A DNA stretch of 64,000 bases, taken from NCBI RefSeq assembly GCF_964204645.1, contig NC_134030.1, forward strand, positions 8,831,222 through 8,895,221, written 5' to 3'. Source of the DNA: Tubulanus polymorphus. Taxonomy: Eukaryota; Animalia; Nemertea. Positions 3,092 to 63,687 of this stretch are shown piece by piece. The position numbers were made by a program, and so were the translations under genes. The notes under the pieces are model-generated. The model worked only from the letters and a program-made list of their open reading frames with translations, was not told where the DNA came from and ran no database searches. How positions within the stretch are numbered: the stretch's first letter is position 1; each line of letters begins with the position of its first letter.

Positions 3092-3347
3092 ATAATCCCA
3101 CTCCGATATGACGAAAGACAAATTCCAAAAGGTTTCCGTTAAACTAATCATTTATTGATTCGATGTTTTTCGATTATAACCTAATACCGTCAGTCATACA
3201 GGAATACCGAGAAAACTATGATATATATATTTAATATTCCTGAAGATGACTATTAGGTTATAGCCGAAACATCGAATCAATAAATATATAAGCTTTAAAG
3301 GAAATTTTTCGGACCTCATCTTTCTCGTTATATTAGTGTGGGATTAT
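3092..3347. mobile_element. Palindromic MITE-like element (related copies at ~25460-25806 and ~58603-58807)
   Basis: Long imperfect inverted arms ATAATCCCAC...GTGGGATTAT and ATTTATTGATTCGATGTTT...AAACATCGAATCAATAAAT. The core TTCCTGAAGATGACT is shared with the ~58700 copy. Confidence 0.7.
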
Positions 3348-4373
3348 GTATTGTTCGGGTGAATCAAGCAGGTGGTCTTAATTTTTGGAGAGCCTCGCTT
3401 GCCGAGGTGTCGCATCTAAGAGAAATTGATTTTCTAACTTAAGATTTTCTTATTTATAAACTGTCTGCAAAATGTTCTCAGTAATCCCCAAGAGTTGTTC
3501 AGACTGATATTTTTCGCTTGTTGTTAATATTTTGAGTAGTGCTAGGTATAAATTGTATCGATTTGAAGCCTATAATTAAATGTGATGAATGGAAAGACTC
3601 TCGAGTTCGTGTTGGTGTACTGTATAGAAAGAATATTGTGGTATTTGAATAAAAATGATTGTAAAAGAAAACACGACCGTGTGTGGTGAATGTTAATTTT
3701 TTGGGTTTTAATCCAAGCTTCCATATTCAAGCGTAGCGAGTTTTCTGGAGATTCAGATTTAGTTTGGTCAATGGAAGAGCCAATGAATAGCATCAGACCG
3801 GTCTCCCTTTTTGTTTGGACTGTCATTGAATAGGGTTCCTACGACCGATTCCTTCTAGAAAACGGAAAATGTTTTAAAAGGAGCTAGAAACTACTTTAAT
3901 TTGAGCGAATTGCCCAAAACTTCTATTCAGAGAAATAGGCTATTAGAAATTGTTTGTCTCATTAGTTCGGTTATCGGAGTTAGTCGACTATAGTCGAACT
4001 AAATGAAACGGAATGTCCGTTAGTCGGAACTATGGTCCGGAAATCGTCGACCACGCAATTGAACACGGTTGCTATAGTTCGGACCTGGCTGATACTGTGA
4101 AATACGTTACGATCAAACTAGTTTTCCTTGAACCACTAGGTAAACTACAGTTTACCTAGTAATTCAACTAATAGTGTGTTCCGTGAAAAGCTGTGAATTT
4201 TATAGGGCAGTGAAATGGGGGTGTTACTAAAACTGTTTTCTGAAACGAAGACCTATGCACTTTGCGATACTAGAACTATGCCTGACTAAAACGAAGACCG
4301 AAGACCTACGCACTCATTAGAAATCATCACTTGGGCACTTGCTGTGTATTCAACCTCTGTCAATGAGTTTAGG

Positions 4374-4777
4374 CATGGACGTATCTCCTAGTTTATACGT
4401 CCATGGTTTAGGCAATACCAGATACAAACAAACGCATATGAAACGTAAATTGGTCGGTTTTCTCTGGTGCGTATAGTCTTCGTTTTAGCAGTGCTTTGTT
4501 TTAGTAACGCTTGTTGCTATATCAAACTTAACTAAACGAATGACAAATTTCAAAATCAATCATTTATTCTCATACAACAATTATACAAAATGCCAGGTTT
4601 GTGCTCGAGGAATTATAATGTAAGCTCCTCAAACACGGACTTTCAAAAACAACTAGTCCAACCACCATAGGCGTATAAACTATAAACGAGAGTTTATACG
4701 CCCATGGTCCAACCATAGACTCTAAAACAGAAACGTCTATGGCCCACAACCATGGACTCTTAAACCGTGAGTCCATG
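4374..4777. mobile_element. Four tiny CAT...ATG palindromic elements (27-41 bp), P-element-like termini
   Basis: 4374-4405 has a perfect 7-bp direct repeat GTTTAGG on both sides. 4666-4706, 4714-4741 and 4751-4777 share CAT(A/G)G(A/G)C...G(T/C)C(C/T)ATG ends. Confidence 0.55.
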
Positions 4778-4809
4778 GCTCCCCGCACTAAAACCAGAGA
4801 TAAACCTGG

Positions 4810-7100
4810 CCTAATACTCTGGAAAGTGTAGGATTAAGTAATCAATCTGATTTACCTTCTTACATCATTTTATTTTCACATCATATTAACTTTTAGCTTA
4901 TTTTCTCAAATTTTAATAGATATTTTATTTCTATTATTACTATGTATGAAATTGTACTAACTTAAAACAAAGTTACATGTAAGGTATTTAGAAGTCTTTA
5001 TCTACGATACATTTCCACTACAGCTGATTTATACAATTTGCATCAATAGGAAAATAACAAAAATACACAAAGAATAATAAACTTTGATCCATAAAAAAAC
5101 CGAAAAATGGACTAGTCTAAGATTATGAATTTGACAATTCATGATGTCAATATAAACGACACATTGTTATATTTTATGAAATATGAATCTATCATGTCAA
5201 CTTTTCAAATGACATCGATTGAGGACATCTCATTTATCAAGAAAAAGCTCAACTTTATTCGATAGGACCTTAATAAATCAATGTTTTATGAACAATTGAC
5301 ATGAACATGTCATTTTATCTCCACAACAACAATTATACCTAAATGACAGGTATTCATGTACTGGAGGAAGCGCCACATGCATTTACAAAAACGTGACCTG
5401 TATTTCAAAAAAAGTCTCCAACATAAAAAAATTAGAACCGGAGATAAAACCACAAATTCAATCTGGAAAGCTAAAGATTAGATTAAATAAACAGTCTTTG
5501 ATGTAATTTTCATTAACATTATTTTACAAGATAGCTAGTTTTGCCACCTTTGCCTTGTCTTTAGGAGGTTTCAAGACATTATCAAATTGGTTATTTTCTC
5601 AAATGTTACAGTTAATGCAAAGTATTTTGGAGGTATTCTCTTCTATGCATTCAGCAAGAGTATATAAATCGAGTATATAAATATTGTTCAACTGCCAATT
5701 TGAATAGAGCTAGGGCAATTACTAATAACTAATGGCTTTGCTACAATTAAGTTAAGATTCAATAACTAACTTTTTGAGGTGCTTCTTGTGCAGACATTCA
5801 GAACCCATACAGACATTGTTAAACCATGGTTTTAGAGTCCATAGCTAGCGTAATCTACTGATTAATACTGTTCATATATCCTCATTTATCAAGAGACTGC
5901 TCCTCTATTTTGCTACTCAATTTTCCATAAGGGCCTTAATGAAAATAGTATTTTATGAACCATTGATGAACACCACAGTATGAATGACGAAACATGTATA
6001 TCATTTTATTCTTAAACAACAACCCCACTAAATGAGTTATTTATAAAACAGTTCAACATAAAACCTACAAATTCACTCACTCTGGAAAGCGTAAGGTAAA
6101 CTAATTAATCTTAGTTATTACAAGAAAACTAAAAACATTGCCAAAAATTTCCTCGTCTGAGAGATTTCTTTAATTATCAACTAGCTTATTTCACAAATCA
6201 AATGTTATATTGAAACAAAGCAGGGTCTGATTTAAGCACTAGTCCAATTGCCCGAGACAAGTATATTTTCATTAGGGCATGTAGGTTATCACAATCACTC
6301 GTCCACCGGGCTTGTGTAATTCTATATCTCAAAGCTTTTATCCCACTCGATGCTAGGGATGATTGTGTCTCAATCGGACTACTCATGTAGGGCAAGTTGA
6401 TTTTTGAGGGGGCAAGTGATATTACATATGCTTGCCCCAAGGTCAAGTGGCATTTATTCCTTAGATCAAACCCTGCAAACTATTATAAAGGTTTTTCTTC
6501 GTGATGATTTTAAGATAAATCGAGTATCTTCATATAAATATGGTTTGACTGACGAAGCTACGGCAACTTCTTAATTTGTATTATTCAACTTGATAGTAGA
6601 TATCAATACAACTCTATATATAGATCAGAAATTCTTCTTGTCCAGATATTACAGGCCCCACACAAATGCGGTTAAACTGATAATCAAAACAAAGCTAGGA
6701 CAATTGACCAATTAGCACTATATCCTCGAGTTAGCCTATCAAGAAACTGCTCCTTTTATTCTATGCTCCTGCTAATCAAATCAGTATTTTATGAACCACT
6801 GAAAAGCCCCACATTGGAATTGTTGCTATAGAAATTAACAACTAAAAAGTTTCAACACGAATGATGAAAATGTACATCGTTTTATTCACATGACAATAAT
6901 ATCTTAAACGAGGAATCATCATCATGCAAGTTCCTAATTTCCAAACATGCGTTATGTGTTACAATAACAGTCTCCAACAGAGCATTAAAACTAGAGATGG
7001 AACATACAGATTCACTCTGGAAATCTAAGTATCAACTAATCATTACTTTCACTAGAAAACTAGAATTTTGCCTATTTTGCCCTGTCTTAAAGATGTCCAA
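4810..7100. repeat. Old, diverged tandem duplication (~620-930-bp period, 3-4 copies)
   Basis: Recurring blocks: TCTGGAAA at ~4819, 5462, 6081, 7016; (T/C)TATCAAGA..GCTC at ~5234, 5886, 6737; TTTTATGAAC at ~5284, 5951, 6787; TCATTTTAT/TCGTTTTAT further on. Confidence 0.7.
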
Positions 7101-8635
7101 GCACCTTGGCATTAAATACTAACTATTCTGATTTTTTTTTCTGGCAGCTGTGAAAACAACAACATAATCATACAATCGGTAACTTTTCAATAACATCAAT
7201 AACTTAAGTTTATAGCTGTTTTACATTCTTTCTAAAAAGTAATAGCTGTTTTACATTCTTATGTACCAGATTTTAGATAGTAAGTCTACCCCCGTATAAC
7301 AATCAATGGTCACAGCAGTGATTGAGTGCGACTAGTTCATAGGACGGTCGATCTTTCATCATAGTTATTCAAAGCATTTTATCATATCAGTTATTTCTTT
7401 TAAGTGTGTTCGATTTAGTTAAGGTTTATGGTTATTTGTTTTGTTCATTACAATAACTGAGTCCGATAGAATGCTTAAAACAACAACAGAAAAGATCTCG
7501 GGTTTTCGCTATACTTAAGGAATATTGTTCGATAAATGAAGAACCTTGTTGATAAATATTTGAAAAAATGCCTTTTTAGGTAAATAGAATATTAATTTGT
7601 TGTTTGTTTCTATTGTTGTTTATTATTTTTATCTATTTTTTTAATATTATCTATTTATGTATGTACTTGTATTTTGTTTTATTTACAATTTATTTATTGG
7701 TTTTTTTTTAAATCAATTTTTTTATTAATTTATGTACTTGTAGTTTGTATTATGTATTATTTATACGCCTCTATTTACAACTGCAGGCATTTTTTCACTG
7801 TAAAGTTTCCGGGTCCATTTTAAAAAAGCGCTACCAATTCACTGCCACTCCTTTATAATCATTATACATCCAATTTGAAGCTAAGTGATTATTCACTAGA
7901 GCCATCTCGTGATATGGATTTACCCATCACAATAACGTAGTTCAAAGTTCAAACAGCTATAAAACAATGTTAAAACGTTCAAAATTAGTTCTAGCTATAA
8001 CTTTATGCCTTGTTATTCCTAGCTTTACCTCTCAAATGTAAATAATGGTCTCCTTTCAAATAAAGCTTTTGATTTCTAATACGTAGCTATGATCATCAAA
8101 CAGATTGATGGAGGCTCAAAGTTAAAACTTGATGTGAAAATCAACATATACGATTCAATTGTGAAATCAGTAACATGGGCCTTCGAAGATATATATCCAT
8201 CAAATTGATACATCTACAATTCAGCAAATACTTAATATTTGTACATCAACACTGGCCTAATGTTATGTTCTATGTTTCCTAACTATGTGATACCTACACG
8301 GACAAATAGCCATAGTTGACTATGTTTAACTATGGTAAAGTTTAAAGATTACTCACAATATCATGTTGAAACTATATCTCAGTTTAGGAGTTAACTCAAC
8401 AGACCTGTGAGGCTGAACAAGGCGCTCAATGCGACCATTTACCCCTAGTGACTAACCTAACTTGACTTCACTATCAACCAAGGATCAAATACCAATATCG
8501 TGAATTAATGGAGCTTAGCTTTTATTAGACTCTCACATTGCATTAAACATTATAAAATAATTTCCTTGAAAACATTATATCAGACTGGTTTGAAAAAGGG
8601 TGATAAGTAAAAAAATTAATACTTTACTATTGAAA

Positions 8636-8835
8636 TCCGCTATTGTCTTTGCCGCTCCTTGATCTCAGTGTTTATAAGATGCACTATTGCTTATGCTGCT
8701 CCTAATAAGATACACTATTGTCTTTGCTGCTTTTAAAGCAGTGCTTATCCTGAATCAGTGTTTATGAGATAATCCATTAGCTTTGTCGCTCGAATCAGTG
8801 TTTATAAGATTCATTATAGTCTCTGCTGCTCCTGG
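8636..8835. repeat. ~35-50-bp degenerate tandem repeat
   Basis: CTATTGTCTTTGC(C/T)GCT and TCAGTGTTTATAAGAT motifs recur about 5 times. Confidence 0.75.
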
Positions 8836-8949
8836 TAAAATATTTCATAGCAATCAACCACCGTTTGTAGAAGAAACCATCGTTGAGTTATTAATCCGTT
8901 GCTGGGTCCTCAACTTCTAATCTGGGCCAATCGGTATTCATCTTCTTGT

Positions 8950-11900
8950 AGATTTTTTGACGAGTAGTTGATCTCAAGCTGGGTTTTTTCTCATAGTTGA
9001 TATTTAGCTGCAATAATTAAAAGAAGATATCCTGTAATGACAAAATATTTCAATAAGAATTAATCGTAATAATTTCATGTATATCAAGTTACCTTTTATG
9101 ATTGCTTGGTTCGTTATCGGTGTGGATCATCTAAAGTTGGTGGGTTAATGAGTTCGATCCTAGTTGGCTGTGCGATCTTCAAGTTGGTTGATTTTTTACG
9201 AATAGTTGTTCTCAAACTGGGTTTTTTTCGCATAGTTGAAATTTAGCTGCAAAGATTAAAAGAAGATATCCTGTAATGACCAAATATTTCAATAAGAATT
9301 AATCGTAATGATTTCATGTATATCAAGTTACCTTTTATGATTGCTGGGTTCGTTATCAGCAATTATCTTATAAGTTGGTTGGTTAATGAGTTCGATTCTG
9401 TTGGCCTCATCTGTTCGCTGTTCCAGTTGGTCGATTTTGGACGAGTAGCTGATCTCAAGCTGGGTTTCTTCTTATAGATGAAATTAAGCTGCAATGATTA
9501 AAAGAAGATATCCTGTAATGACAAAATATTTCAATAAGAATTAATCGTAATAATTTCATGTATATCAAGTTACCTTTTATGATTGCTGGGTTCGTTATCG
9601 GCAATTATCTTATTAGTTGGTTGGTAAATGAGTTCGATTCTGTTGGCCTCATCTGTTCGCTGTTCCAGTTGGTCAATTTTGGACGAGTAGCTGATCACAA
9701 GCTGGGTTTCTTCTTATAGTTGAAATTTAGCTGCAATGATTAAACGAAGATATCCTGTAATGACCAAATATTATATTATCTTAATAATTTCATGTATATT
9801 AACTTACCTTTTATGATTGCTGGTTTCATTATCGGCGATTATCTTATTAGTTGATTTGTTAATGAGTTCGATTCTAGTTGCCTGTGCACTGTTCAAGTTG
9901 GTTGATTTTTTACGAGTAGTTGTTCTCAAACTGGGTTTTTTCTCATAGTTGAAATTTAGCTGCAATGATCAAAAGAAGATATCCTTTCATGACAAAATAT
10001 TTCAATAAGAATTAATCGCAATAATTTCATGTATGTCAAGTTACCTTTTATGATTGCTTGGTTCGTTATCGGTGTGGATCATCTAAAGTTTGTGCGTTAA
10101 TGAGTTCGATTCTGTTAGGCTCATCTGTACGCTGTTCAAGTTGGTCGATTTTGGCCAAGTAGTTGTTCTCAAGCTGGGTTTTTTCTCATAGTTGAAATTT
10201 AGCTGCAATGATCAAAAGAAGATATCCTTTAATGACAAAATATTTCAATAAGAATTAATCATAATAATTCCATGTATATCAAATTACCTTTTATGATTGC
10301 TGGTTTCATTATTGGCGATTATCTTATTAGTTGATTGGTTAATGAGTTAGATCCTAGTTGGCTGTGCGTCATTCAAGTTGGTCGATTTTTTACGAATAGT
10401 TGTTCTCAAACTGGGTTTTTTTCGCATAGTTGAAATTTAGCTGCAAAGATTAAAAGAAGATATCCTGTAATGACCAAATATTTCAATAAGAATTAATCGT
10501 AATAATTTCATGTATATCAAGTTACCTTTTATGATTGCTGGGTTCGTTATCAGCAATTATCTTATAAGTTGGTTGGTTAATGAGTTCGATTCTGTTGGCC
10601 ACATCTGTTCGCTGTTCCAGTTGGTCGATTTTGGACGAGTAGCTGATCTCAAGCTGGGTTTCTTCTTATAGATGAAATTAAGCTGCAATGATTAAAAGAA
10701 GATATCCTGTAATGACCAAATATTTCAATAAGAATTAATCGTAATAATTTCATGTATATCAAGTTACCTTTTATGATTGCTGGGTTCGTTATCGGCAATT
10801 ATCTTATTAGTTGGTTGGTAAATGAGTTCGATTCTGTTGGCCTCATCTGTTCGCTGTTCCAGTTGGTCAATTTTGGACGAGTAGCTGATCTCAAGCTGGG
10901 TTTCTTCTTATAGTTGAAATTTAGCTGCAATGATTAAACGAAGATATCCTGTAATGACCAAATATTATATTATCTTAATAATTTCATGTATATTAACTTA
11001 CCTTTTATGATTGCTGGTTTCTTTATCGGCGATTATCTTATTAGTTGATTAGTTAATGAGTTCGATTCTAGTTGCCTGTGCACTGTTCAAGTTGGTTGAT
11101 TTTTTACGAGTAGTTGTTCTCAAACTGGTTTTTTTCTCATAGTTGAAATTTAGCTGCAATGATCAAAAGAAGATATCCTTTCATGACAAAATATTTCAAT
11201 AAGAATTAATCACAATTATTTCATGTATGTCAAGTTACCTTTTATGATTGCTTGGTTCGTTATTGGTGTGGATCATCTAAAGTTTGTGCGTTAATGAGTT
11301 CGATTCTGTTGGGCTCATCTGTACGCTGTTCAAGTTGGTCGATTTTGGCCAAGTAGTTGTTCTCAAGCTGGGTTTTTTCTCATAGTTGAAATTTAGCTGC
11401 AATGATCAAAAGAAGATATCCTTTAATGACAAAATATTTCAATAAGAATTAATCATAATAATTCCATGTATATCGTTATCGGTGTGGATCATCTAAAGTT
11501 TGTGCGTTAATGAGTTAGATTCTGTTGGGCTCATCTGTACGCTGTTCAAGTTGGTCGATTTTGGCCAAGTAGTTGTTCTCAAGCTGGGTTTTTTCTCATA
11601 GTTGAAATTTAGCTGCAATGATCAAAAGAAGATATCCTTTAATGACAAAATATTTCAATAAGAATTAATCATAATAATTCCATGTATATCAAATTACCTT
11701 TTATGATTGCTGGTTTCATTATCGGCGATTATCTTATTAGTTGATTGGTTAATGAGTTAGATCCTAGTTGGCTGTGCGTCATTCAAGTTGGTCGATTTTT
11801 GACGATTAGTTGTTCTCAAACTGGGTTTTTTCGCATAGTTGAAATTTAGCTGCAATGATTAAAAGAAGATATTCTGTAATGACAAAATATTTCAATAAGA

Positions 11901-14075
11901 ATTAATCATAATAATTTCATGTATATCAAGTTACCTTTTATGATTGCTGGGTTCGTTATCGGCAATTATCTTATTAGTTGGTTGGTAAATGAGTTCGATT
12001 CTGTTGGCCTCATCTGTTCGCTGTTCCAGTTGGTCAATTTTGGATGAGTAGCTGATCACAAGCTGGGTTTCTTCTTATAGTTGAAATTTAGCTGCAATGA
12101 TTAAACGAAGATATCCTGTAATGACCAAATATTATATTATCTTAATAATTTCATGTATATTAACTTACCTTTTATGATTGCTGGTTTCATTATTGGCGAT
12201 TATCTTATTAGTTGATTGGTTAATGAGTTCGATTCTAGTTGCCTGTGCACTGTTCAAGTTGGTTGATTTTTTACGAGTAGTTGTTCTCAAACTGGGTTTT
12301 TTCTCATAGTTGAAATTTAGCTGCAATGATCAAAAGAAGATATCCTTTCATGACAAAATATTTCAATAAGAATTAATCGCAATAATTTCATGTATGTCAA
12401 GTTACCTTTTATGATTGCTTGGTTCGTTATCGGTGTGGATCATCTAAAGTTTGTGCGTTAATGAGTTAGATTCTGTTGGGCTCATCTGTACGCTGTTCAA
12501 GTTGGTCGATTTTGGCCAAGTAGTTGTTCTCAAGCTGGGTTTTTTCTCATAGTTGAAATTTAGCTGCAATGATCAAAAGAAGATATCCTTTAATGACAAA
12601 ATATTTCAATAAGAATTAATCATAATAATTCCATGTATATCAAATTACCTTTTATGATTGCTGGTTTCATTATTGGCGATTATCTTATTAGTTGATTGGT
12701 TAATGAGTTAGATCCTAGTTGGCTGTGCGTCATTCAAGTTGGTCGATTTTTGACGAGTAGTTGTTCTCAAACTGGTTTTTTTCGCATAGTTGAAATTTAG
12801 CTGCAATGATTAAAAGAAGATATTCTGTAATGACAAAATATTTCAATAAGAATTAATCATAATAATTTCATGTATATCAAGTTACCTTTTATGATTGCTG
12901 GGTTCGTTATCGGCAATTATCTTATTAGTTGGTTGGTAAATGAGTTCGATTCTGCTGGCCTCATCTGTTTGCTGTTCAGTTGGTCGATTTTGGAGGAGTA
13001 GCTGATCTCAAGCTGGGTTTCTTCTTATAGGTGAAATTTAGCTGCAATGATTAAAAGAAGATATCCTGTAATGACAAAACATTTCAATAAGAATTAATTG
13101 TAATAATTTCATGTATATCAAGTTACCTTTTATGATTGCTGGGTTCGTTATCGGCAATTATCTTATTAGTTGGTTGGTAAATGAGTTCGATTCTGTTGGC
13201 CTCATCTGTTCGCTGTTCCAGTTGGTCGATTTTGGACGAGTAGCTGATCTCAAGCTGGGTTTCTTCTTATAGATGAAATTAAGCTGCAATGATTAAAAGA
13301 AGATATCCTGTAATGACCAAATATTTCAATAAGAATTAATCGTAATAATTTCATGTATATCAAGTTACCTTTTATGATTGCTTGGTGCGTTATCGGCAAT
13401 TATCTTATTAGTTTGTTGGTCAATGAGTTCGATTCTGTTGGCCTCATCTGTTCGCTGTTCCAGTTGGTCAATTTTGGACGAGTAGCTGATCTCAAGCTGG
13501 GTTTCTTCTTATAGTTGAAATTTAGCTGCAATGATTAAACGAAGATATCCTGTAATGACCAAATATTATATTATCGTAATAATTTCATGTATATCAAGTT
13601 ACCTTTTATGATTGCTGGGTTCGTTATCGGTGCGGATCATCTAAAGTTGGTGGGTTAATGAGTTCGATTCTGTTGGCCTCATCTGTGCACTGTTCAAGTT
13701 GGTCGATTTTGGACTAGTAGTTGATCTCAAGCTGGGTTTTTTCGCATAGTTGAAATTTAGCTGCAATGATTAAAAGAAGATATCCTGTAATGTCCAAATA
13801 TTTCAATACGAATTAATTGTAATAATTCCATGTATATCAAGTTACCTTTTATGATTGCTGGTTTCGTTATCGGCGATTATGTTATTAGTTGGTTGGTAAA
13901 TGAGTTTAATTCTGTTCGCTGTGCGCTGTTCAAGTTGGTCGATTTGGACGAGTAGTTGATCTCAAGCTTGGTTCTTCTTGATAGCTGAAATTTAGCTGCA
14001 ATAAAAAATATATCCTGTAATGAAAAAATATTTCATTTAGAATTTTTATAATCATTTCCATGAGAATAAACTTAC
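8950..14075 (-). repeat. Tandem array of ~22 units of ~230-242 bp; each reads on the minus strand as intron plus non-coding exon
   Basis: Unit anchors (GATATCC/GATATTC) at ~9031, 9270, 9512, 9754, 9983, 10226, 10464, 10706, 10948, 11177, 11420, 11636, 11873, 12115, 12344, 12587, 12824, 13065, 13307, 13549, 13784, 14014. Minus strand: CATAAAAG|GTAA(C/G/T)T ... TCTTCTTTTAATCATTGCAG|CTAAAT. Confidence 0.95.
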
Positions 14076-14414
14076 ATTTCAAAATTGCTGGATGCGGTGC
14101 TCCCTGATGCTAGAAAATAGTTTGAAGGAGAGGGGTTAGTAAAAGACAGCTATTAGCAAGAGGAATAAGACCTAAGTTTAGGATATCCTGTCAGGATAAG
14201 GCTCTCAATCTGACATACACAGTGAAATTGAAATATTCTCCCTTCCAAATTCAGGAATTTATTTGTGCATGTACAGATTTGTTTTATCTCCCTTCGATCG
14301 GAAGTAAATCTGCGTGAAATGATTTTGGCAATATGTATCAAAACTAATACAGCTGTAAGAAGAATCAGCTACATTTTAAATGTCCATGGACCTGAATGAA
14401 AAACAATTTCACAT

Positions 14415-15460
14415 AACATATTGAATTTACCTTAATCGTAGATATCTTATAGTAATATATTAATGAGTTTTCACCTTTGATTCTAATTGTCAGTTAAACA
14501 ATATCTATTATGCGTAACTTGACACACAGTATGGCTTTTAGATGAATCAGTTAGGTGTAGGTAGATTTTGGCTATTGTGAAGAACATGATTAGTTGCCAT
14601 AAGCACGGCAGTTGGAGATGTAAATACTGATCAGTCGATGAGACTGATTCAGATGTGCTCATACATATATCAGCTATATTTAAATTTTCAGTTTTACGAC
14701 ATTTATATTATGGACATGTATTACATACCGTATAAATAATTTTTGATCTTAGAAATATTGAATTCATCTTAATTGTGGATCTAAGCCATTGGTTAATGAG
14801 CAATTTTTCCTAGCTATATATGACAATTTTCAGTTAAACAATAATCATAGCGCATAACAAGGCACAGAGTATGGCTCTGTGGAATGATTTGAATCAATGA
14901 AAGCTTCTTTTACTCTAGATTTATCAAAGTGCTGAGACCTAATCACGGTTTCTAAAAGACCTGCAGTCCATAGTTATCCCCATATATATATTACACCAGA
15001 TCTCGATAGAGCCCTAGACAATATTTTATACATCTTTCCCCCAGAAATTCATTAATGCAATGGGTAAAGCAGCATATAATATATACTGTAAAGTGCCTGA
15101 ATGTTTATAAATGTATCAATATACTATTTGTAAAAAAATCTATTAACTGACGATAAAGTTTAATTGATATATATCTTTACAGGTAAAGCCAGCCTACATG
15201 TATACGGGGCCCTAAAATATCTACACCCGAAGAGTTTCTCGTCAAACATTATAAGATATTGAATGATTGCTAATATCTAAGCGATTGGTTAATTAGTAAA
15301 TTGTCCTATCTATATCTTGATTGTCAGTTAAACAAGCTTTATGAGGCCTGAAATATCTACGGTACATTTGAAAAATTTCACATTAGATATTGAATTTAGC
15401 TTAAGTGTACAAATCTTTTAATCAATAACTGACCAATCTACATTTTTATTATCAGACCAA
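14415..15460. repeat. Diverged dispersed/tandem ~100-bp block, 3-4 copies
   Basis: TTGAAT...TTAAT(G/T)AG...TCAGTTAAACAA blocks at ~14421, 14758, 15259, with a weaker copy at ~15390. Two copies end in CACA(C/G)AGTATGGCT; CCT(A/G)AAATATCTAC occurs at ~15211 and ~15347. Confidence 0.65.
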
Positions 15461-16023
15461 AGAATATTCAAGGGACCTCACTCAATCATTTCGTCTGATA
15501 TTGTAAATATTCAAGCAATCATTGCCCTAACTATATTTCAATTTACTTTTAACAATATGCCGGCCATAGAGCTTCAATAAAGTAGTGCGGAGATGGTTAG
15601 CTTGACCAGCATCTCTATCCTCACCAGTGCCTATGCATTCTACCCCAGATATGAAAAATCAACTTAGCTTTATGTATGTATGCATTCCTGTTGCCATGCA
15701 GGATGAGACTGCCAGGTTTGGTTGCGGCAGGACTTTCGGTGTTTGGTTCATTCAACGTGGAGTCTTTTGTGGGCACTTCTAGTGGGTAGATTTTAGATTG
15801 GCCTTTCCAGATAAACCTGAAATGAGTAAAAGAACGATATTCTGTAGTTACACAATCCTTTCTGAATCATACATCGTAATTTACACATGTATCAACTTAA
15901 CTTTCAATATTGCTGAGTTCAGTGTTCTTTTTTCGCCATCTTCTGTAGTCGCCTTCAGCATCTTCTTCTTGATCTAGGGAGTCCTGAAATGAAAAAAAAG
16001 ATACGAGCGATGAAAACCTGGTA

Positions 16024-16824
16024 CGGAACAAAACTAATGTCCGAAAGCTTTTCAGCTCTCCGTCGCCGGTCACATACCGAGAACACCAGACAAAGAGCCA
16101 GCCAGGAATATACTGCCCTCTACACGCCCTCACACAGAACACGAAAACCAGGATGACGACGCCTTACTTTCACCATTTACCGACAGGGTGTGCCGGGTGA
16201 CGTCAGTAACTGACAAACCTATCAAATTACCCAAGCCAAAAATAGGGCAGCGCAACTGGATTGCCCGCACTAGCACTCAAAGGAAGACAAGACTTAGCCC
16301 TGCCCGAAGCAACCCACGCGGAATCAATGAATACTAACACTCAAAGGAAGACAGGAAAATTAATCCCTGCCCGAAGCAATCCCTTAAAAGGAATCAATGA
16401 ATGCCAGCACGCAAGCGATCCCGCAGTGAATCAATGAATCCTAGCACGCAAAGGAAGACAGGGAAATTAATCCCTGCCCGAAGCAATCCCTTAAAAGGAA
16501 TCAATGAATGCTAGAACGCAAAGGAAGACAAGACTAAATCTTTGCCCGAAGCAATTCCTGAAAAGGAATCAATGAATACTAGTAGACAGTCCAGCTTTAC
16601 CACTCCATTTTTAACCTATGCAATCCGACTGACTTGCCCGTCATTGACGTCACCCAGCACACTCTGTCGATACATGGGGAGAGTGAGGCCTCGTCATCCT
16701 GGTTTTCGTGTTCCGTATGAGGGTGTGTAGAGGGCAGCCATTTCCTGACCGACTCTTTGTCTGACATCCTCGACATGTGACCGGCGAAGGAGAGCCGACA
16801 CTTTGGGACATTAGTTTTGTTCCA
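16024..16824 (-). other. Long imperfect inverted repeat (arms ~16024-16278 and ~16574-16824) predicted to fold as an RNA hairpin on the minus strand
   Basis: Arm 1 GGAACAAAACTAATGTCC...CACGAAAACCAGGATGACGA...GGGTGACGTCA aligns with the reverse complement of arm 2 over ~250 nt. No TSD seen. Confidence 0.93.
16273..16582. repeat. ~65-70-bp tandem repeat (~4.5 copies) filling the hairpin loop
   Basis: CAAAGGAAGACA...TGCCCGAAGCAA...GAATCAATGAAT recurs at ~16278, 16342, 16449, 16519, plus one short copy. Confidence 0.9.
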
Positions 16825-17358
16825 GCAAACGTTGAAATTCGACAGAGAAATCGGCCCTGAAAAATAGAAAGGGTTAAATCCTGAAAAATAGAACGGATTA
16901 ATTAACACGGAACAGCACAGGACAGCACGGAGACGAACAGTTACACATAAAACATAAAGACGTCGTTCCTCAGGAAGCAGGAACAGGAGCGGGAGCGCAG
17001 CGAAGATCGCCAGGAGGAGAATCCACGGTAGCATGTTCACAGTGTGAGTGTGCAGAGGTGAATGGCCTATGCTTGTGTACACCGTGGTCAGCCGGTGACG
17101 TATTCAATAGCGCGTATAAATGATATCAAATATCAAATATCAATTTCAAACTCTGAATAGCCGCAATTGTGTCTCTATTGTTGAATGGTTTATCATTATG
17201 AAAGATTCCACCGCCGGGTTGAATACGCGCCAGTAGCCAGCCGAACAATATAGTGGAGGAACTTTAATAAGGCCATGAAATAAATTACTTGATTCCCAAC
17301 AGCTACTTCCGAATTTATTAGCCGCCGCCTGTTTTTTTTTTTCTTAAATTCTAGAATA

Positions 17359-17562
17359 GGTAAAAGTGCAGATCCGCACCTCCTCGTGATCGACGCAATC
17401 TACTGAATGACAGAATCAAGGCTAAAATCTAGTGAAGATATCTTAGAATTAACCAATGGAAATCGTACTGAATTGCTGATGACATTTTGAATCTGAAACA
17501 ATGATAATTAATGTAATTGATTGAACCGTTTACGGGGAGAGGTGCGGATCTGCGCTTTTACC
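17359..17562. mobile_element. MITE with GG-initiated TIRs and 8-bp TSD (Merlin-like)
   Basis: TIR GGTAAAAGTGCAGATCCGCACCTC / GAGGTGCGGATCTGCGCTTTTACC, with CTAGAATA duplicated at 17351-17358 and 17563-17570. Confidence 0.85.
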
Positions 17563-18494
17563 CTAGAATAATTTGTAAATCAAAATTATACCGACCTATA
17601 GTGGTCTATTTGAGTAATTGGGGGAAACCCACTAATACCATGTATTCGTCATTAATCATCATTTCATACCGTTATCACAGAATCCCGTCAATAGACAGAT
17701 TTTCATTAAAAAACTCCTTGATTCAATTGAGGGGAGACTTAATTACTTGGAGCACCGATCCTCTGAAATTCTGCCAAAACACTTCATGCTTTACCACTCA
17801 TAATTTGAAAAAAAACCCAAATTGTTTTCTTTGATTTTGATGCTGGATTAAACGGTACATCATCATGCAAATTTAGGAAAGTCCATATTAGAATTTCGTT
17901 TCTTGTTCCAATTTACTCTTATCCCATTATTGATTTTGGTCAAGAGTATGGCGGTATCAAATCATGTACAGGGTCAGTAATCAAGATTCAAGATAATAAG
18001 TCGAAATTCGACATTTAAGTCGAAATTGTGAAAAAATTAACTCGTATGGCATCTACTAGGGGCTTGATCCGTATTTGAAAGAAAAAAATTTTTTTTCTTT
18101 AATTTTGATACTGGACTCATTAAACGGTTCCTCATCATGTAAATTAAGGAGTCCATAAGAATTTCGCCGAATTTCGTTTCTTGTTACTAGGACTTTGGGT
18201 CAACTAGCATTACGCCGGGCTTTTTTATGGACCCTGGTGTTAAATTGAAACGACTGGCGACGTCGCCGACACCGTCAACTATTTATTGAACTATTTAGCA
18301 ATTCGCGTCCGCCCCTTACTCCGGAGCCGCATCAGAAAACTCCTAATTTTGATCCTGATTTTACACTTTCCCGACGAACTGTCAAAATCTGACCTTCCTT
18401 GCAGATTTCTCCCCTAGATTTCTCGCTTCACCGACTTCTGAAAATTAATGAACGAAGCCGACTTTTCGTTTTTTAACTAGAAGCGTACGAGACG

Positions 18495-23677
<5,183 letters not shown>

Positions 23678-42973: not shown

Positions 42974-63687
<20,714 letters not shown>

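Follow-up and report, generated by a model that had tools for sequence, protein, structure and literature searches.

A one-strand, wobble-biased rod in a dispersed non-coding repeat of the nemertean Tubulanus polymorphus

The genomic window considered here (64,000 nt of T. polymorphus; contig NC_134030.1, positions 8,831,222 to 8,895,221) holds a long inverted repeat in which many of the differences between the two arms are transitions that become G:U pairs in the RNA of one strand. Is such an asymmetry the trace of an RNA fold kept by selection, and if so, what could the folded RNA be doing? The window belongs to a 23.04-Mb contig of a 268-Mb genome, and the inverted repeat sits between what we take, by eye, to be an NDUFS2-like gene (1-2930) and a malic-enzyme-like gene (from about 19.5 kb). 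The last intron of the NDUFS2-like gene contains an 83-bp tandem repeat (2373-2774, 4.8 copies), and a large SIK-family kinase exon, with a 98% match to a SIK2-like protein of T. polymorphus, lies at 61498-63687.

Folding of the arms and of the tip

Local alignment of the arm at 16015-16279 (the 3′ arm in minus-strand RNA, supported by the alignment and the fold) with the reverse complement of the arm at 16573-16833 (the 5′ arm, which reads in the sense of a putative LINE ORF2 fragment) covers 261 columns, 198 of which are identical (75.9%). Thirty-seven transitions (18 A/G and 19 C/T) give G:U pairs in minus-strand RNA and eight go the other way (binomial p=1.5e-5), so that 90.0% of the columns can pair on the minus strand, compared with 78.9% on the plus strand. 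The sequence-only reading from which this analysis started had counted about 33-37 against 7-8 such transitions by hand, with a DNA identity of 75-80% and about 90% pairing on the minus strand, and these estimates hold; so does its count of two small indels (two 2-nt gaps). Transversions number 18 (16 without the frayed outer end), for about 12 counted by hand. The binomial test on wobble direction and the folding of both strands, which it had proposed as checks, both come out one-sided: the minimum free energy of the RNA is −491.6 kcal/mol for the minus strand (z −28.8) and −355.8 kcal/mol for the plus strand (z −17.1). The module of about 800 nt is predicted to form a single rod. Its helices near the base measure 46, 33, 18 and 18 bp; they are long and nearly unbroken, the G:U pairs being scattered along them.

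The 'loop' between the arms, at 16280-16572, is itself structured, which goes beyond the sequence-only reading. On the minus strand this tip consists of four tandem units of 64-75 nt and a mini unit, each unit being composed of a closing stem and two hairpins flanking an invariant UUGCUUCGG linker (a three-way junction). The tip (about 300 nt) has no clear inverted repeat at the DNA level, although its minus strand folds (z −6.7, with 28 G:U pairs, compared with z −1.1 for the plus strand). Across the units 97% of cells are paired, against 35-49% in slid controls, and the units vary mainly by wobble exchange, with one A-U/G-C swap; as the units are few and related, this is weak evidence when taken alone. 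The unit motif had no match in metagenome or viral contigs. Likewise, Rfam gave no match at E<=5 over 13000-20000, and hammerhead, viroid-like and tRNA/SINE identities of the rod are unsupported.

Could selection have acted on the fold of single-stranded DNA instead, the fold serving a Helitron-like carrier in cis as a signal in a transposition intermediate of the rolling-circle or self-priming type? G·T is better tolerated than A·C in DNA as well. When the module is folded as DNA, however, the strands differ little (−201.7 kcal/mol, z −18.7, for the minus strand and −183.5 kcal/mol, z −17.6, for the plus strand), the gap being merely 18 kcal/mol compared with 136 kcal/mol for RNA, and the tip is mostly open in the centroid fold. 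Other fold-backs in the window and in the other copy loci were used as controls, and their transitions are symmetric (17:19, 9:8, 8:6, 6:7 and 4:4), with a single exception at 5:0; the bias is therefore not general to the inverted repeats of this genome. One of the symmetric controls is a decayed 256-bp palindrome (74%) at 3092-3347 of the window, probably a MITE. The exception is a 188-bp palindrome next to a Polinton-like insertion (1052-1239 of copy locus L022), and its one-strand G·T bias speaks for a fold selected in DNA.

The carrier repeat, its copies and its putative transcript

The rod module is the best-conserved part of a dispersed non-coding repeat of T. polymorphus of more than 13 kb. 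In the window this carrier extends from 4181 to 17978, as delimited by similarity between copies; other copies reach at least 3 kb further right, and the ends are ragged and masked by nested insertions. We found no coding frame of its own in it. Within the carrier lie a 242-bp satellite, whose array length varies among copies, further tandem arrays, nested insertions and a captured exon, common to many copies, which by eye we take to be a likeness of the TXNL1 C-terminal exon (PITH domain; L038:6332-6631, plus strand). The satellite occupies 8954-14058 (minus strand, about 21 units), and each unit reads as a donor, a 61/85-nt intron, an acceptor and an exon-like piece of about 158-182 nt, with splice zones conserved at 0.96-0.97 compared with 0.90 for the remainder. 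One frame of the exon-like piece reads like a decayed coiled-coil coding exon, which suggests that a captured exon was amplified.

Several other elements lie in or beside the carrier. A 204-bp MITE at 17359-17562 (24-bp terminal inverted repeats and an 8-bp target duplication, CTAGAATA, from whose length we assume it to be hAT-like) is inserted in the window's copy only, outside the module. Frames that by eye we take to be Polinton-like (integrase, ATPase, polymerase-like; L022:1451-7676 and L035:3796-6070) are found in or beside two copies. A short repeat family (3966-4120 and about 19150-19240 of the window, L038:3350-3545) occurs near gene starts and also at the left edge of many carrier copies, where it often forms an inverted pair. 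A distinct mobile element, whose interior holds a 163-bp tandem repeat (L008:1-1036, L035:8314-9197), lies in or beside several copies, and one copy adjoins two tandem GPCR-like frames in a 2.1-kb direct duplication (L026:434-2003 and 3791-5359).

The genome holds about 120-150 copies of the module in at least three subfamilies, a multiplicity that the sequence-only reading had likewise not described, and we found no published description of the module. A DNA search returned about 40 copies at 91-98%; with a 31-codon stretch of the arm as query, matches numbered about 123 at 81% or above plus some 27 weaker ones, and a second arm piece split the copies into about 31 close ones, about 85 at 57-69% and one more distant group. 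From one subfamily to another the sequence of the inner stem is replaced to a large extent, with about 60% identity at the peptide level. The tip of the window's type is confined to subfamily A and occurs in only about 40 copies, its unit number varying between them, some being shorter by one unit. Twenty copies, all from the closest subfamily, were aligned (19-20 used per statistic), and the wobble bias is present in 20 of 20 (33-44 against 8-19). Among them the rod diverges by 2-3% and the flanks by 4-6%, with far fewer indels in the rod, and the best genome matches are at 91-98% for rod queries and 83-95% for flank queries; the conservation of the rod is inflated by the choice of copies for their likeness to it, and the flank indel counts by alignment. 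The inserted MITE aside, the coverage by genomic read contigs peaks over 15.9-17.1 kb, a depth that is not a copy number.

The sequence-only reading had set against itself the case of arms that are the termini of a multicopy DNA transposon whose consensus already carries their differences. The module is indeed multi-copy and every aligned copy is biased, but the arms are not termini: homology continues for kilobases past both of them, which rules out a MITE or other DNA transposon bounded by the arms.

Two tandem splice-acceptor-like sites lie just 5′ of the rod on the minus strand (16857-16901, with intron ends at 16881 and 16857 in a 24-bp duplication) and are kept in 18-19 of the 20 copies; in the 500 bp upstream of them we found no donor that is both strong and conserved. 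On the 3′ side of the rod, strong acceptor-like sites at 15984 and 15817 (15817-16018, minus strand) frame a short exon-like piece, in which a 4-nt indel shifts the reading frames of one copy group against those of another. Splice sites were scored with a rough matrix drawn from general knowledge and checked on host introns in the window. The splice-type signals and the folding strand coincide, and we infer that the carrier makes a minus-strand transcript, probably spliced.

Since introns and satellites are retained, the copies must have spread as DNA. This mode of spread, together with the ragged ends and the captured exon, fits cis selection at the level of the element, as a DNA fold in a Helitron-like carrier would have it, and it sits awkwardly with an explanation by RNA structure, which leaves unexplained how an RNA fold favours spread. 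On the other hand, the rod is internal rather than terminal, and neither Helitron ends (5′-TC, and 3′-CTRR with a subterminal hairpin), which the nested insertions may hide, nor a Rep/helicase were found. Taken with the small difference between the DNA strands, we regard selection on a DNA intermediate as unlikely.

Selection, mutation bias and the origin of the stem

The aligned copies allow changes to be divided into private ones (in one copy) and shared ones (in at least two copies), as singleton and shared counts without ancestral states. At Watson–Crick pairs the private changes are strand-symmetric, with 33 making G:U, 28 making A·C and 52 transversions. The shared changes are skewed, with 26 making G:U and 10 making A·C (p=0.011), part of this class being recurrent CpG change, and 14 further shared changes turn G:U into Watson–Crick pairs. 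Of the 59 shared changes, 40 (68%) preserve pairing, compared with 51 of 138 private ones (37%; p=9e-5). The divergence between the arms (37:8:16 for G:U, A·C and transversions) departs in the same way from the private spectrum (33:28:52; p=9e-5), the direct contrast of single and shared changes for G:U against A·C giving only p=0.089. Double compensatory changes are nearly absent within the aligned subfamily, where wobble exchange dominates. The flanks, whose mutation spectrum was computed with misaligned rows masked, are symmetric in both classes (56 and 52 for shared changes) and have no G+T skew, and the strand skew of the satellite runs opposite to that of the rod.

A strand-biased mutational process in the founder (transcription-associated deamination, or ADAR/APOBEC editing followed by reverse transcription), preserved by copying without any selection, would also leave a one-sided arm comparison. 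Indeed, the ratio of A·C changes to transversions between the arms is neutral (8:16, compared with 28:52 for private changes; p=1.0), so an added directional excess of G:U fits the arm counts as well. Against this, the private changes and the flanks show no strand preference, the shared variants run both ways (26 to G:U and 14 from it), and the A/G and C/U classes are even (18 and 19), which ADAR alone would not yield; moreover, only one of the two strands folds in the tip, and the rod carries few indels. We therefore consider mutation bias without selection still less likely than a DNA-level fold. Because private changes and flanks are symmetric while shared changes keep pairing, the data argue for selection in the source lineages, and their simplest reading points to purifying selection on the one-strand fold in the copy-founding lineages, followed by neutral decay. 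The structural constraint on the minus strand proposed by the sequence-only reading is thereby supported.

Could the constraint be on a protein instead? An open frame of about 146 codons (16597-17037, minus strand) with a hydrophobic start runs into the 5′ arm and is open in most copies, as would be expected of a family of small secreted-protein genes in which the fold is incidental. However, its synonymous share is neutral (0.31 observed, 0.29 expected), stops and frameshifts are present, searches returned no homologues or domains, and a C/T-rich hexamer repeat accounts for the hydrophobic start. The frame is probably not a protein gene, and a secreted-protein family is a very improbable explanation of the module.

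The stem itself has another likely source. Read in shifting frames, the arm gives R(R/Q)LS(F/V)AGH.., DKEP and ALYTPS.G.RKPG, which we take to resemble the C-terminal end of ORF2 of RTE-clade LINEs. A pattern requiring an Arg codon where the copies have TGA gave ten near-identical matches, several of them beside diverged module copies, and none in the control. A HMMER search over 1.8 billion proteins for LINE relatives of the arm returned chance repetitive matches only, no intact source LINE was present among the scored genome matches or in the DNA of the window and the fetched copies, and no copy restores a continuous LINE frame. With fair confidence, we consider an RTE-type LINE, and more precisely the 3′ end of its ORF2, the likely source of the stem.

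Possible roles of the rod

At a probability of roughly 60%, we favour the reading that the dispersed repeat gives rise to a minus-strand, probably spliced, non-coding transcript, within which the rod is an RNA structure kept by selection. A piece of about 260 bp stands as an inverted pair on either side of the tandem units; the founder lineages kept changes between Watson–Crick and G:U pairs and purged mismatches, and the single copies now decay neutrally. The rod, with its helices and branched tip, could serve as a long dsRNA for dsRNA-handling proteins, recognized by its shape rather than by its sequence. Our best single guess for its output is docking on, or processing by, the host dsRNA machinery, altering the fate of the repeat's own RNA; candidates would be the one Dicer with a siRNA-type Argonaute, or a binder of the Staufen/ADAR type, and the effect would fall on the repeat's own RNA rather than on the silencing of one host gene.

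A special case of this explanation is a true hpRNA, as the sequence-only reading proposed, in which the rod would be diced to endo-siRNAs of 21-23 nt; these would act in trans to silence a host gene, the repeat family itself or relics of LINEs. The long inverted repeat, the extended and nearly continuous stem on one strand with its scattered G:U pairs, the pairing kept by selection through wobble exchange (double changes being rare within the subfamily) and the probable LINE origin of the stem are all features that such a locus would have. In Drosophila, hpRNAs may exist in several copies (PMC10317233), in plants hairpins with G:U pairs work as triggers of RNAi (PMC9263138), and nemerteans have kept siRNA-type Argonautes (siAGO) while being reported to lack DICER2 (PMC11114477). 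This absence, however, speaks against dicing of this kind, as does the lack of an endo-siRNA signature reported for Notospermus gonads (PMC11114477). Our search of the genome found a single match to the Dicer dimerization domain (PF03368), a search that a diverged second Dicer could escape. In addition, the inner stem turns over between subfamilies, and among the scored genome candidates searches with arm pieces gave module copies only, with no intact source LINE or other trans target. With one Dicer found and Dicer-2 reported absent from nemerteans, an endo-siRNA output is doubtful; the rod cannot be filed as an hpRNA locus, and we give dicing into endo-siRNAs a minor share of the likelihood. 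Slightly more tentative is a second version, in which a selfish or host repeat with a LINE-derived, wobble-tuned rod would feed small RNAs to the siAGOs of nemerteans or act as a decoy for the dsRNA machinery and so favour its own spread; here the tip would offer a row of junctions to which proteins bind, in a host lineage that lacks Dicer-2.

Known systems resemble the rod in part. The hpRNAs of Drosophila have G:U-rich stems, and the rod is like them (hp-CG4068, Nmy/Tmy) in being a long imperfect inverted repeat, built from pre-existing sequence, that folds on one strand. It differs from them in lying within a large repeat in 120-150 dispersed copies, in its branched repetitive tip and in a host lineage without Dicer-2. 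Rice MIR820, carried in CACTA elements, and maize Mu killer are transposon-borne or transposon-derived hairpins, and they share with the module a fold-back RNA (here predicted) that travels with a mobile element or was formed from one; unlike them, the rod has no target, transposase or defined termini that we could find, belongs to an animal and turns over in its stem between subfamilies. The carrier recalls non-autonomous Helitrons and Pack-type elements, being large, dispersed and non-coding, with variable arrays, a captured gene piece and ragged ends, but the diagnostic Helitron ends were not found in it, and we know of no such element with a long wobble rod on one strand. Retrozymes, viroid-like rods and LARDs, too, are repeats that code for nothing and conserve a rod-like fold of their RNA; unlike them, the module has no hammerhead or Rfam match, no LTRs were seen and introns are kept. 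By analogy, the rod may at most work like a Drosophila-type hpRNA or a transposon-borne hairpin.

The rod is thus a well-supported structural signal with a putative function. For the siRNA-type Argonautes that nemerteans are reported to keep without Dicer-2 (PMC11114477), a long, putatively selection-maintained dsRNA present in more than 100 copies is a candidate substrate. The module also offers a clear example from nature of wobble pairs building up in a fold-back, in which the dead copies provide a built-in neutral control.
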